A stretch of DNA of 64,000 bases from Macrostomum lignano (GCA_002269645.1 NIVC01003366.1:1-64000); one strand, 5' to 3'. Shown: positions 3,514 through 9,500, counted from the stretch's first letter. A program made the numbers and translations. Notes: generated by a model not told the origin, from the letters alone.

Positions 3514-6500
3514 TTAGCTCCAGTTGATGGCTCCTCCCAAGTTGATGAGCTGATTTCCGTAAGGGTGTGCTGAAAAAGAAATTTATATTTTATTTGCATT
3601 TTCATGTCTTTCTGTCTGCCTGTACGCGTCGGTCTGCTTATTAATATTAAATACATATATGTGCGGCTACTATGCAGTATGAGCAGCTTACCCTTTTCAC
3701 AATCTAGCTTCAAATTTAGCTTGCTAGACTACTGCCCAGTAAGTACGCTCGTAAGTAGTCGATCGCAAATCTTGGCGAAGAGGTCAACAAATGCGTTCAA
3801 GTCTGAAAGTGAAAAATTAAACCAGTTATAGCGACACCACAAGCTCAAGTACAGTTTTTTATTTGATTTGCTGTTTTAAAGTTTAATTTTGAATAAAAAA
3901 GAAAGAAAAAAGATGAAGATGCAAACTTCTCTAAGTTGCTTTGCTCTCCGGGCAAATTTCATAGCGCAAATACTCTCATTAGCTAATATGTATTTCTAAA
4001 ATTTGTGCACCCATTAAGTTTTTTTAGAAATAAGAAACTCTGAGCAATGAAAATCGTTTTCATCGTGCGATCCTTTCTTTTGGTGCCGAGAACAAAATAA
4101 AATATGGGTTTCACAAAAATTACAAAAAATCAATAGAATTGTTTATAAAAAGCAGAATGTGTTTTACGAAATAAAATATTTCGGTCTGTTGTTGCACTGT
4201 GCATTTATAACAAAAACTGGATGTTAGATTTTTAGAGTAAATTTAAAGGCTTTATTTTTGTAAGTACAAGTACAGCACTATTACGTTTTTGAAGATTTTA
4301 AGGGCTTAAAGTTTTCGAACGATATCAGTACCGGACATTGATTTAAAGTTTATCGAATTGGGTAATAATTAATATAACATGTCCTTAAATTTGCGGTACT
4401 GATGTTTCCGGAAACTATCAAAGCCTTCAAAAATTTCATGAGAGCTTAAGTTTTTCATGTTTACAATTCTATTGCTCCCAATTGTATAATTGTGTTCGAT
4501 TTTCATTTTTCGACATTCGAAAAACAAACTAAGCAAATAATGCAAGCGAAAAAGTTTTTTAATTGAGCATACGACTCGTATTTTCAGCGGAAGAAAAATT
4601 TTTGAGGAAAAAGACAGACTTTTTAGTCGTGGGTATTTAAAAATTATCTTTTTTACAGTTTTTCATATCGAAATTTTCAGATTTGTCAGACGACGAAGAA
4701 CTAGTTTATTTATTTTGCATCCATAGCAGCTATTCCTTCGGTAGTCTCTAATGTAAAAAAGTTTTTAAATGGTCTAAATCTTTCATTTCAGCTAGTCTTT
4801 AAGTTTTTTGAGGCTAACCACCGCCCCCTTTACTCTATTTGTGTAAATTTAATTTTAAATAAAAATATAGTCGCATCAATATAATTGTAAGTCGATGACA
4901 AAAACCCGAGTGTGCGCGCGAAAAATTTTGGAAAAAAATTGGAAAGCGGTCCGAGACCGAGAGTAGGGAAACCCCAAAGTCTACGGAAATAGTTCTTTAG
5001 ATTGGAGAGTCTGGGCAGCTTATTTACCAAGGGCGAGGCTCCTATCAGGAGTCACCAGAACCCTGGTGAGTATTAAGTATTTAAATACGAGTACTTAGAA
5101 AAGTTTTTTTTGGAATGCACATCACCTCCGGTGAGGGCACTTTGGGATGGAGCTACCCGACGGGCAGGTCAATTGGATATTGTGCACAACCCGAGAAATG
5201 CCGCCAGAAGGCAGCCAGGGTAAAAACAGTCAGAGACCGTCTAAAACTTTTAGACTTACGCTGCATTTATAAATACCGCCTGTAGTGAGCATTAGCTTAA
5301 TTTAATTTGTTGGAATTCATAAACAACTTCTTTGTCTAATTATTGTCAATACTCTCGTAAAAATCCTAGTGCAAAACGGAAGTGCTTGGAATAATATTTT
5401 CCCACGTGCCAAAATTAAAGCAAGCTATAGAGGCTAGCTATTGCGAAGCTTATAAAGACAATCTAAAAAACTGAAGCGCATTCGTGCCTTGGCAAGATTA
5501 TCTTCTCTTTTGTGCAAAAAGTCACTTTAAATAAATTCAAAAATTTTTCGTTCAGTTTTAACGTCTTTTAGCAGTTTTGAGTCTGTCTGCAAAAGGGAGG
5601 AATCAATATATGAAAGTGTTACTTGAAAATTTGTTAGATATTGATTGTGAACTGTAAAATATCTAATTTAAAAGGTTTTATGTTAGTACAAAATTATAAA
5701 GTGATACCATGTCAAGTAAACAGGGAAAAATTTATTTTTAATATTGTTTTTATATGAAGCAACGTTTCAGGTGAAATATTTACATTGTTATGTAACTACG
5801 TCGAGAATTATTAGAAATTAATAACGTTTGTTCTGAACGCCGTACAATTGTTAAAAAGAAATCTAAATTGCTAATAATCAAAAATCTACTAATTCTTACA
5901 TTGCACGAGTGATTAGGAATTATATTATTCATACAAAGACAAATGACACGATCAACAAATTATCTACAAGGCCACTACTCACTTGCTGCAGTGGTTGGCC
6001 GGAACGTCACTCCAGCTGGCTGGGCTTCGCTTGGCGGTCGACTGGACGCGCTGCTACTTCGACGGCCTGCATTACTGCCGCCGTTGGCGCCGCTCCCAGC
6101 AGCGGCGCAGTTCACCAACAGCACGGGTCCGGGGGCGCAGCGTTCTGCTCCGGTTGTCATGGCAACCAGCTGCAACGATACTCGACCACCAGCCGGCAAA
6201 TCGTCGACGCGAAATCGAAGCTGATTGGCCGGAATTGGCTGGCCGTAGGGCCGACCGTCGCGCAATATTTGATAGCCCTGTCGGTTGGTGGTTTTTTGTG
6301 CTACTTATAGTAGACTTTGCGGGCATAATAATAATAATAATAAATGATTACTGCTTTATTGGCCAGATGTGCAACCGACAGCTTAGCCGCAGCTATGCGC
6401 ATCTGAAGGCTGCGTACGGCTGCTCCGTACAAGCACTAGGGGGGGGGTCGCCACACACACCCTCAATTACCTACGCTCATAACCACTAGGCTAGAACCCC

Positions 6501-9500
6501 TGCAGGCGTGATTTAATGTTTAAATCGGTTTAATTCGTAAATATTTAAAAGATCGAACTGTCTAAGTCTCAATCAGACTAGCTATTTACCTAAAGCGCTG
6601 TGTGAATTCTGCAGTTTGAGGGGGGTATTTTTGATGTCACAAGCTCCAAGTGTTAGCACCCCTTGGTACTAGCGAGCTCATGATATTCTCTTCGAAAACT
6701 CCTAATTGAGGTGGCGCCTCTGAAACTGACGTTCAGACGTTCGATCCCCTCCCAATGAAAAGTTCAGGCCACGCGCTCTTGGTGCACGTACGAGCCTAAA
6801 AATGAATTTAATTTGAATGCGGTATCGAGTGAACGATACTCGAGGATGAATTACCGGAAGAGGTATCCCGGAAGAGGTACCCCGATCAAATTGTTGGTTT
6901 CTAAAAGCAACAGAATTGCAAAGATTCAAAATCAATAAAATATCATTTACGTTCAAGCTTGTATAGTTGAAAGAAATCAATCAAAACAAAACAAAAGAAA
7001 CCAAAAGTTTGCCAGGAAAAGTTTGCGCTGCTAATCCACTAGTGACTATCGAACAGCTTCCGGTCAAACATGAGCATAACGCCAATCAGCATCGCTTTCA
7101 TATCTGTGCTCATCATCTCCCCCACTTGCAGGGTGTACACTGGGCCTTTTTCATCGATTTCGACCGCTGTGATGAGGCGGCGCGTGATGCTGGCGACCTC
7201 CTCGGACTCGTCGGGTAGCAGCACCCGGAAGCGGTGCCGTTTGCAGCTGGCCTGGCAGTACTTCGGCATGCGTACGAGGATACGGGCGGTGCCGTGAATG
7301 TCTTTGATGGTGAACCGCAGGCTGCATAGAACTCGTTCAACGCTCACGTAGCCAATGACCTCTGTTGGTGGCGACTCGACCGTTACAGCCCAGTGCTGGT
7401 CGCAGGTCAGCTTCACAACAGTCTGCTTGCTGCTGATGTCCGAGATGAACAGATTGAAGCCCTGGTTGGTGGAGCCGCCGCAGCACCCGGTGGATCGTCG
7501 TTGAACCATGGCTCGCAAGAATGGCAGCCCGGCGTCACCCGTCACCTCGTACTCGCAGTAAGCTACCGGGTGCACCTCCGCGTGGGTAACAAAGGCGAAC
7601 CTGTCCAGGTAAGGCTTGCTGCCGCACTGACCCGCCACCTCGCTGCAGGTGTCATCCTCGTCATAGACGTCTTCCTCCTCTTCCTCCTCGTCAAGGAATC
7701 GAGTTGTTGCATTTGGAGCGGCTGATTGGTTTAAAAACTCGTCCAGTTTCGCGTCGTCATTGGTTCGGTCGGAGAGCTGAGCAGTACCGAGTGGCATGTT
7801 TCCTGTGTCCGCGTGACTCACGCGTACGAACTAAGACTTCTCATTTGCGGACACAGTTGAGAATGGAGCTTTGTTTGAGCTGGCCAAAAGCTGAGCAATT
7901 TAACAACATGCTTTTGCTTGGATTAACCAGAGGAACTGCAGAAATGCACGACACATCGTTTTAACATCAATTTTCGAGTCTATGGCAATCAAAGCCTTTG
8001 AAAGTTTTTCTAGTTCCTCAATGAAAGCTTTATTTGTAACTGTGAAAATTTCATATTTATGAAACTGTGAATATTCAAGTCGAATTTAAATTAAATTTAG
8101 ATGAGCATCCAGAGCCAATGAGAAGTAGAGCTGGGATCAGACGTGACGTCGTGTACGTCAGCCAATCAGATTTCAGGAATGATCAAGACAGGCGTGGGGT
8201 GGGATGTTCATATGGGGATAGAGAGGATGACGTCATATCCCTCAGCCAATCATAATTCAGGAGGGGTGTTAAGCTAAAAATGCAACGCAAGACTCACGGA
8301 GATGCCGGACTCCGGTGTCAGCGGATCCCAGGCCACGGTCAGACCGTCAGAGTCCAGGGCCTCCAGTTTGAGCTCGGGACTCTGCGTGACTGAAGCGCCC
8401 GTGACGCGCAGAGGCGGCTGACTGAGCTCGCTCTCGCAGAGGCAAGTCACCGTGTCAGATTGCGGATCCACCTGTGCAAAATCGTTGATTTATTGATCGT
8501 TTCCAATATATGGAATTCGACAGTTAAATCTCTCTTACCTCGTCGCTACCAGCGATAGCCTTGACCTGAACTTCGCAAGCCAGACCTGGCTGCAGATCCG
8601 ATAGGTAATAAAAATAGTTTCCACGACTTGGCGACGCCTTCAAATCGCCGTGCCACTGACCGTCGACGTAGACGCTGTTGAATTGGTAAAGGAGAGGACT
8701 TGGGGTTAGTTAAAGACATTAATTAGTATCCGTTCATTCAGGAAGACGCACTTAGCTTAGAATTAGAACGCTAAGGTGCCTATTTAGTTTTTTTAAAATC
8801 CATTTGTGACAGATTTAATTTAGGCTACTCAGAGAAGTAGAGTAATAGAGATTTTAATCGTAAAATTTCACACATAGCCCGAGAAGTGTCGCTATAAAAG
8901 AAGCATCCTGTGCACAACTGAGACCAGCGTCTGGATGACTGACTGACGAAGGCCAACTTCTTCACAATCAAACAATTAGCTACTGTAATTTTCGGAAGCC
9001 AGTGACGATCGAACGTACTCTTCAAAAAAATCAACGCTCCCAAAAAGCAAACGGAACCCACCGATATCGGCTGACTCCGGCATCGTCTGGGGCGCCCGCC
9101 CAGGACACGGTGGCGGCCGCGCCGCCCGCGACGCCAGCCGACGCCGGGGCGGGCGACACGGATGGCTCCGGCGCCGACGGCCTCCGCGGACAGGCGACCC
9201 GGAGAGTCGCCGACGCCGGGCCCAGCCGGAAATCGTCATCCTCGTTCTCGCCAACGCGGCCGTCCTCACCGGAGCTCGAGCTGACGAAGGCCGCGGCCTG
9301 GACGGCCACTCGAATCGTCCGACCCGGTCGCAGCGGCTCCAACGTTGTCTGCGAGGTCTGCGACGGTAGGAGGCCGCCACGACGGGCGCCGTTGATCAGC
9401 AGCTGGTAGCCGGCCAGCTCCACGCCGCTTGTCGCCGCCGATTCGTCGAATGCCCAGCGGACGGCGACCCGATTGGGACCGGAGGACACCGCGAACAGTC

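Follow-up and report, generated by a model that had tools for sequence, protein, structure and literature searches.

A divergent scramblase-family gene nested on the same strand within a fibronectin type III host intron of Macrostomum lignano

Nested genes, phospholipid scramblases, Tubby/DUF567 proteins and spliced-leader (SL) operons are the described systems closest to the locus analyzed here. The locus lies in a 64,000-nt stretch of the genome of the free-living flatworm Macrostomum lignano (hereafter the window: positions 1–64000 of contig NIVC01003366.1 in GCA_002269645.1, assembly Mlig_3_7, GenBank NIVC00000000), in which a single-exon gene of the phospholipid-scramblase (PLSCR)/Tubby-like superfamily sits inside an intron of a gene encoding fibronectin type III (FN3) domains. 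Among human nested genes, ∼63% are on the strand opposite their host, ∼37% are on the same strand and ∼41% have a single exon (PMC3192792). An earlier annotation of this locus (the sequence-only reading) took antisense orientation to be the usual arrangement, which is true but holds weakly at the human ∼63%; a sense, single-exon nested gene thus belongs to a common minority class.

The PLSCR fold is a 12-stranded β-barrel around a hydrophobic C-terminal helix and is Tubby-like; that helix has been argued to be buried, palmitoylation to be the main membrane anchor, and non-palmitoylated PLSCR1 enters the nucleus (Bateman et al., PMC2639001). Tubby-like proteins that lack a lipid anchor are either soluble or found in the nucleus (PMC2639001). 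In M. lignano, SL acceptors carry the motif [T/C]TNCAG and operons are tandem arrays with ∼100-nt spacers (PMC8629364). Against this background, the feature described below is an ordinary nested gene: host and nested gene are both already present in the deposited annotation.

The nested gene and its annotation

The coding sequence (CDS) of the nested gene runs from 7797 to 7039 on the minus strand, encodes 252 aa in a single exon and ends at a stop codon at 7041–7039. The reading frame is open from 7830, is bounded upstream by an in-frame TAG at 7833–7831, and has its first ATG at 7797. The coding region lies wholly within one host intron (8297–6278), the arrangement by which nested genes are recognized. 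The sequence-only reading had described a complete, intronless, same-strand open reading frame (ORF) in a 2-kb intron, and all of its coordinates proved correct.

Membership of the PLSCR family, also proposed from the sequence, is borne out by three kinds of comparison. Pfam Scramblase (PF03803) matches at 37.6 bits (cutoff 25.4; E = 1.9 × 10−9), covering profile positions 94–220 of 221 only. A HMMER/phmmer search of 1.84 billion representative sequences returned just ten matches; the meaningful ones comprise M. lignano PLSCR paralogs (E = 3.6 × 10−14 and 2 × 10−12; 29–33% identity) and anonymous scramblase-like proteins of ∼230–250 aa. The predicted fold, described below, is Tubby-like.

A protein deposited from GCA_002269645.1 under BOX15_Mlig012151g1/g4, and called ‘Phospholipid scramblase’ in UniProt, has exactly the sequence of the ORF product. 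On two contigs the annotation has this 252-aa gene and the 1920-aa host as distinct entries; the nested gene has a cluster prefix of its own, Mlig012151, which is common to the copies of the locus (g1, g4 and two hidden). The GenBank annotation of M. lignano is transcript-derived: StringTie/TACO assemblies and a de novo transcriptome were cut at mapped SL and poly(A) sites, and low-expression novel transcripts were dropped (PMC5730564). A separate 252-aa model therefore implies RNA support. By the naming rule of that annotation (PMC5730564), the separate prefix further suggests assembly as its own transcriptional unit. No mention of gene ID Mlig012151 was found in the literature and supplements searched. 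Taken with the selection and fold results given below, this identifies the ORF as a genuine protein-coding member of the phospholipid-scramblase/Tubby-like superfamily.

The host gene and its split FN3 domain

The host is annotated as a 1920-aa gene on the same strand (window >17797 to 3729), both on the window contig and on a second genomic copy of the locus (L003). Its enclosing intron (8297–6278, minus strand; 2,020 nt, phase 0) opens with GTGAGT (8297–8292) and closes with CGACAG. M. lignano prefers GT[G/A]AG donors and CAG acceptors (PMC8629364), and the intron bears both species-preferred motifs. On its 5′ side, exon A (8471–8298) has the acceptor ttgcacag and the GTGAGT donor, encodes FN3 strands A–B and ends in phase 0 at ...PESGIS (CCG GAG TCC GGC ATC TCC); its GC content is 65%, against 41% for the intron. 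On the 3′ side, exon B (6277–5983; cag then GGCTAT at its start, CAGCAA then gtgagt at its end) begins GYQILRDG (GGC TAT CAA), encodes strands C–G together with a tail rich in Ser and Ala, and has a phase-1 end. Upstream of exon A, a further minus-strand exon (8674–8539; CAG acceptor, GTAAGA donor; ...VYVDGQWHG...AIAGSDE) encodes part of the preceding FN3 repeat. The likely terminal coding exon (3802–3729, minus strand) ends in NLNAFVDLFAKICDRLLTSVLTGQ before its stop and reaches the annotated gene end; its strong acceptor at 3803/3802 (ttaatttttcactttcag) suits an exon B that ends in phase 1 and a gene whose stop is annotated at 3729.

Several lines of evidence support the claim of the sequence-only reading that the intron cuts an FN3 domain at phase 0, between GIS (8298) and GYQ (6277). 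The splice sites fit, and the Pfam fn3 profile matches across the junction at 16.3 bits (E = 0.011), which is sub-threshold on its own. The rebuilt C-terminal half of the host scores 55.7 bits against fn3 (E = 6 × 10−15) over four stretches, the best being the 8539–8674 exon; this reconstruction, made with a dynamic-programming exon chainer, is not an exact copy of the 1920-aa protein and was used for Pfam architecture only. A profile built from the host's five repeats matches solved fibronectin FN3 domains in the PDB (E = 2 × 10−9). As indirect support, peptides spanning the GIS/GYQ, SRYR/VYVDG and GSDE/VDPQ junctions matched the window or its record exactly, whereas one wrongly guessed junction peptide did not.

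Structure prediction is consistent with the same picture. An AlphaFold model of the spliced exon A plus exon B peptide is a seven-strand sandwich with a predicted local distance difference test (pLDDT) score of 75.8, and almost all of its top 50 Foldseek neighbors are FN3 domains, at template-modeling (TM) scores of ∼0.7. Exon A supplies strands E18–24 and E27–32, and the splice junction falls at residues 42/43, inside strand C (E41–48). As modeled, the FN3 fold would require exon A and exon B together. The preceding FN3 repeat is likewise split by an intron (VSRYR/VYVDG; 9062/8674), three residues from the position equivalent to GIS/GYQ, and a 66-nt mini-intron (8538–8472; 8539/8471) separates it from the split repeat under study.

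Copies of the locus and purifying selection

The locus is present four times in the assembly, in the window and in L001, L003 and L004. The DV1 line of M. lignano has a known duplicated karyotype (PMC8629364), with which four copies are consistent. L001 and L003 are at least 99% like the window, too similar to inform on constraint, and selection was accordingly measured against L004 only, the most diverged copy.

The ORF is intact in all four copies, its sole indel being the in-frame loss of one Glu in L003. Seven substitutions separate it from L004, six synonymous and one nonsynonymous (T31K, in the disordered tail). The ratio of nonsynonymous to synonymous divergence (dN/dS, Nei-Gojobori) is 0.049, and the chance of at most one replacement among seven changes under neutrality is P = 8 × 10−4. 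Fewer sites have changed in the ORF (7/759) than in the flanking intron (36/1,262; Fisher P = 0.004), while the synonymous divergence of the ORF (dS 0.035) is similar to the divergence of the intron (1.8–3.0%). The ORF also stands out as a GC island (GC 57%, and 72% at third codon positions) in an intron whose flanking parts have 41–43%. The host exons are conserved as well. Those flanking the intron diverge by 0–1.2% from L004 (two substitutions in the 174 nt of exon A, none in the 295 nt of exon B), and host exons together carry 3 changes in 1,155 nt compared with 44 in 2,136 nt of non-coding sequence (P = 7 × 10−6).

The host frame is broken in two of the four copies by 1-bp deletions in G-runs (GGG to GG, GGGGG to GGGG), one in L001 at the equivalent of window position 9101 and one in L004 at ∼1120 (window ∼17790). 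These deletions account for the absence of a host model from L001 and for the truncated, 869-aa one on L004; they resemble homopolymer errors of long-read sequencing more than pseudogenization.

A scramblase fold without scramblase hallmarks

An AlphaFold2 model of the nested protein is confident over residues 60–252 (pLDDT mostly 84–96), with 12 strands (E72–225) and a C-terminal helix (231–243). The best Foldseek matches in the PDB are At5g01750 (1zxu; E = 1.9 × 10−4) and the TULP1 tubby domain (E = 4–5 × 10−4). The predicted fold is thus that of the phospholipid scramblases. Residues 1–59 are acidic, include a poly-Glu run and are predicted to be disordered.

Alignment with the paralogs highlights three departures from the family. 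The Cys-rich palmitoylation cluster (QCCSCCSCC-type in the paralogs) falls in a 16-residue gap in the nested protein. The Ca2+-binding segment (D-x-D-x-F...D) reads TDADTFLLEVPQD in the paralogs and EKGPVYTLQVGEM in the nested protein, so that by alignment its acidic positions are K, P and M. A further 12 residues are deleted near the first strands relative to its relatives. Judged by sequence, the protein lacks the palmitoylation and Ca2+-binding features of scramblases while retaining the profile match and the predicted fold. The missing Cys cluster, the missing acidic Ca2+ residues and the acidic disordered N-terminus make a classical scramblase less likely. It is more probably a soluble, and possibly nuclear, Tubby-like protein than a Ca2+-activated, membrane-anchored scramblase.

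Expression from within the intron

We assign a probability of about 0.55 to the most likely reading, that the nested gene is made as its own transcript from its own intronic promoter. Transcription by RNA polymerase II would begin from a TATA-less promoter of CCAAT boxes and cyclic AMP response element (CRE)-like sites located in the intron's first ∼250 nt (roughly 8050–8260). An acceptor just before the ATG (7803 or 7831) would serve to shorten the leader, quite possibly through SL trans-splicing, and polyadenylation of the nested mRNA would follow a few hundred nucleotides past the stop. Host transcripts would read through the nested unit, splice out the intron and join ...PESGIS to GYQILRDG..., completing the last FN3 domain.

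The candidate promoter (8140–8262, minus strand) comprises two modules 84 nt apart, each pairing a CCAAT box (CTGATTGGCTGA / ATGATTGGCTGA) with a CRE-like site (TGACGTCA / GACGTCAC). The modules are carried by a 35-nt direct repeat, D1 (8144–8178 and 8228–8262), within the first ∼200 nt of the intron and 350–450 nt upstream of the ORF ATG. In each D1 copy the CCAAT box is inverted and has the extended NF-Y form (C/A)TGATTGGCTGA, and the CRE-like site (TGACGTCA or GACGTCAC) accompanies it, oriented with the ORF. The exact 10-mer GATTGGCTGA is found nowhere else in the 64 kb; the full CRE palindrome TGACGTCA occurs four times in the window against one occurrence expected. The composite motif is restricted to the intron, where it has two strong copies and, past the ORF at 6756, a third match that is weaker and looser. 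At 8122–8084 on the same strand, another inverted CCAAT (CATTGGCT), the third, can be read, and after it an AT-rich, TATA-like stretch (TAAATTTAATTTAAAT). Such an arrangement is reminiscent of TATA-less promoters and would place the start site near 8050–8080, close to the range that the sequence-only reading had suggested.

Between about 8065 and 7936 the putative leader would carry four to five upstream ATGs (uATGs), and the mature 5′ untranslated region is therefore probably trimmed. The segment immediately upstream of the start codon (7833–7798, minus strand) holds two candidate 3′ splice or SL acceptors, TAG before 7830 and CAG before 7802, with no ATG between them and the start codon. The AG at 7831 has an upstream pyrimidine fraction of 0.33 and is in frame; that at 7803 has 0.40 and is out of frame. 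Both could serve as cis or SL trans-splice acceptors.

At the other end, the nearest candidate poly(A) signal is ATTAAA at 6807–6812 (minus strand), ∼230 nt past the stop, and AATAAA at 6355–6360 (minus strand) is a further candidate. A 17-nt AT-rich pair, inverted and partly direct (6805–6821 and 8081–8097), brackets the putative unit, with arms at ATTAAA and just downstream of the CCAAT/CRE module. Also in the 3′ part of the intron, the minus strand at 6443–6500 (GGGGTTCTAGCCTAGTGGTTATGAGCG...C9) resembles the 5′ half of a tRNA or the head of a short interspersed element, and no other part of the intron varies as much in indels from copy to copy. Searches of the intron with Rfam and for tRNAs gave no match, and a suspected tRNA at ∼6480–6500 was dismissed by ARAGORN and Rfam.

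Independent promotion, one of two explanations offered by the sequence-only reading, is thus plausible given the separate RNA-seq-derived 252-aa model, its own cluster prefix and the upstream CCAAT/CRE duplication. Several points weigh against this account of the locus. The CCAAT/CRE module is motif-level evidence, and its intactness in all copies is statistically uninformative. The start site, the 3′ end and the trans-splicing status are likewise read from motifs. The evidence for use of the 8298/6277 junction is indirect. The four copies lie within 3% of each other, so that selection is gauged over a short time span. Lastly, the protein libraries searched yielded no ortholog from another species, including other Macrostomum.

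Alternatively, the nested gene may have no promoter of its own. Its mRNA would then be cut from the host pre-mRNA by SL trans-splicing (at 7803, 7831 or 7936) and intronic polyadenylation, an operon-like arrangement with a shared promoter and competition between cis-splicing and trans-splicing/cleavage. The species is well equipped for such a route, as ∼30–39% of M. lignano genes are trans-spliced and ∼15% are in operons (PMC8629364, PMC5730564). Host and nested gene share a strand, the acceptors just before the start codon have no uATG after them, and the SL sequence closes with an ATG whose frame an exon starting at 7830 would continue. However, the sole match to the [T/C]TNCAG acceptor motif is at 7936, with two uATGs after it, and neither 7831 nor 7803 matches. 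The promoter-like CCAAT/CRE module is present, the gene carries its own cluster prefix and not the host's (a point that depends on the naming rules), and M. lignano operon genes are described as tandem, not intron-embedded (PMC8629364). We consider this route unlikely, and more doubtful still its strict form, an ‘intron-embedded operon’ in which each host transcript would choose between finishing the FN3 gene and releasing the nested mRNA.

Origin of the nested gene

The other explanation offered by the sequence-only reading was retroposition, whereby a spliced PLSCR mRNA would have been copied into the host intron. The CDS is a single exon, and introns are a frequent destination of retrocopies. 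Nevertheless, the premise that canonical PLSCR genes are multi-exon fails in M. lignano, where two other paralog groups are also single-exon and the intronless state is that of the family. In both, the CDS span is exactly 3 × (aa + 1) nt (690 nt for the 229 aa of P0004, 687 nt for the 228 aa of P0014), from which it follows that each has one exon. These paralogs, Mlig026026 and Mlig009655/031540 (L005 6001–6690; L006 6001–6687), are not nested; one of them adjoins a phosphatidylserine decarboxylase gene on the opposite strand (L005 11196–12690).

The marks of retroposition are likewise missing. No A-rich tract was found in the intron after the ORF, the only A6 run being at 6297–6292 beside the host acceptor, and a repeat search of the intron found no target-site duplications or other direct repeats bracketing the unit. 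The 17-nt AT-rich pair described above was considered as such a mark and judged a chance occurrence of low complexity, although its position is suggestive. Old events could have lost both the poly(A) remnant and the target-site duplications. Because the closest paralogs are only 24–31% identical to the nested protein, any retroposition event would be too old to diagnose. On this evidence, we regard a retroposed origin as improbable, and the proposal finds no support here.

A fusion isoform and a chimeric database entry

The sequence-only reading also noted that the TAG at 7833–7831 could act as a phase-0 acceptor in frame with the ORF. The ORF would then serve, possibly in addition, as an alternative 3′-terminal host exon: exon A would be spliced to this site and a scramblase-like domain would replace the last FN3 domain. 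The frame does fit, and one public model, UniProt A0A1I8FLB3, joins host FN3 exons to scramblase sequence. By our estimate, however, such phase-0, in-frame compatibility arises by chance at ∼1/3 × 1/3, or roughly one time in nine. The acceptor is a TAG with only 33% upstream pyrimidines, in a species whose preferred site is CAG, and splicing there is predicted to truncate the FN3 domain after strand B. The RNA-seq-based annotation, moreover, has host and nested gene apart.

The public model itself is a poor witness. A0A1I8FLB3, a 683-aa ‘Fibronectin type-III domain-containing protein’ that maps to window ∼10700–5990 on the minus strand, strings together host FN3 exons, fragments of the nested ORF and exon B, and alternates between frames. 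Derived from an older assembly rich in errors, the model has frameshifts throughout; its junction is at ALDSD/AAPNA and not at 8298/7830, after which it runs on into exon B. A naive exon chainer used here yielded the same kind of fusion of host and nested ORF. We therefore rejected it as a true fusion protein and consider it a chimeric ab initio artefact, which makes the UniProt entry misleading. While the frame compatibility stands, the host isoform is left with a weak acceptor and an artefactual model, and we think it very unlikely.

The least probable alternative, a decaying pseudogene or an unexpressed chance open frame, could appeal to a Pfam match that spans only the C-terminal 58% of the model and to the missing hallmark motifs, and is set aside in view of a dN/dS of 0.049 with intact frames in four copies, a confident predicted fold across the full barrel and a transcript-derived gene model that implies an mRNA.

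Genomic surroundings and significance

The host introns are packed with long tandem arrays, including (CTGT)n, (CTAA)n, 12-mers at 88–204 copies, and 17-, 19-, 24-, 27-, 33- and 39-mers. Arrays lie at 9793–10211, 10863–11136, 11751–12322, 12943–13700, 14591–14960, 15236–17599, 19119–20175, 20971–21393, 21644–22133 and 22954–23472. On both strands they generate long spurious ORFs (SVCL/TETD repeats), and they are a probable cause of fragmented transcript assemblies. Elsewhere in the window, other genes are represented by exons with Pfam matches well above cutoff: a Band_7/SPFH (stomatin-like) exon (27348–27917, plus strand), a protein-kinase domain exon (42761–43495, minus strand) and two exons of one amiloride-sensitive (DEG/ENaC) channel gene (55657–56463 and 60785–62032, both minus strand).

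Beyond annotation, the importance of the locus is small. It offers a clean example of a same-strand nested gene in an SL trans-splicing flatworm, and it may be used as a test case for a gene's own promoter versus trans-splicing out of a host intron. The analysis indicates that M. lignano scramblase genes are generally single-exon, flags a divergent paralog with the PLSCR fold that lacks the palmitoylation and Ca2+ motifs, and documents A0A1I8FLB3 as a chimeric mis-prediction of host and nested gene. With neither the retrogene nor the domain-swapping isoform supported, the sole mildly novel possibility left is that the nested gene is expressed through SL trans-splicing inside the intron of its host.

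Comparison with known systems

Relative to the PLSCR family (PF03803; human PLSCR1–5 and M. lignano Mlig026026, Mlig031540 and Mlig009655), the nested protein shares the Pfam match, a predicted 12-strand barrel with a buried C-terminal helix, conserved CCG, PP/G.V and K...D positions, a disordered N-terminus and, with its M. lignano paralogs, a single-exon CDS. It differs in being only 20–31% identical, in the 16-residue gap that replaces the Cys cluster, in a Ca2+ loop that reads K-x-P...M for D-x-D...D, in the 12-residue deletion in the first strands, and in an N-terminus that is acidic and poly-Glu rather than Pro-rich. The Tubby and DUF567 proteins (At5g01750, 1zxu; TULP1, 2fim and 3c5n) are the best structural matches of the model, although their sequence identity to it is ∼12%.

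As a locus, it resembles the nested genes of other metazoans such as human and Drosophila (PMC3192792): a complete gene with a single-exon CDS sits in one host intron and is removed by host splicing, and its presence could interfere with transcription of the host or lead to premature polyadenylation of host transcripts. Its same-strand orientation places it in the minority class (∼37% in human). Unlike those systems, M. lignano has SL trans-splicing and operons, so that a shared-transcript route is conceivable. The likeness to SL operons, in M. lignano and in other flatworms and nematodes, lies in two same-strand genes that may share one primary transcript and in acceptor-like AGs before the nested ATG. 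Described operons, however, are tandem with ∼100-nt spacers, whereas here one gene is enclosed in an intron of the other.

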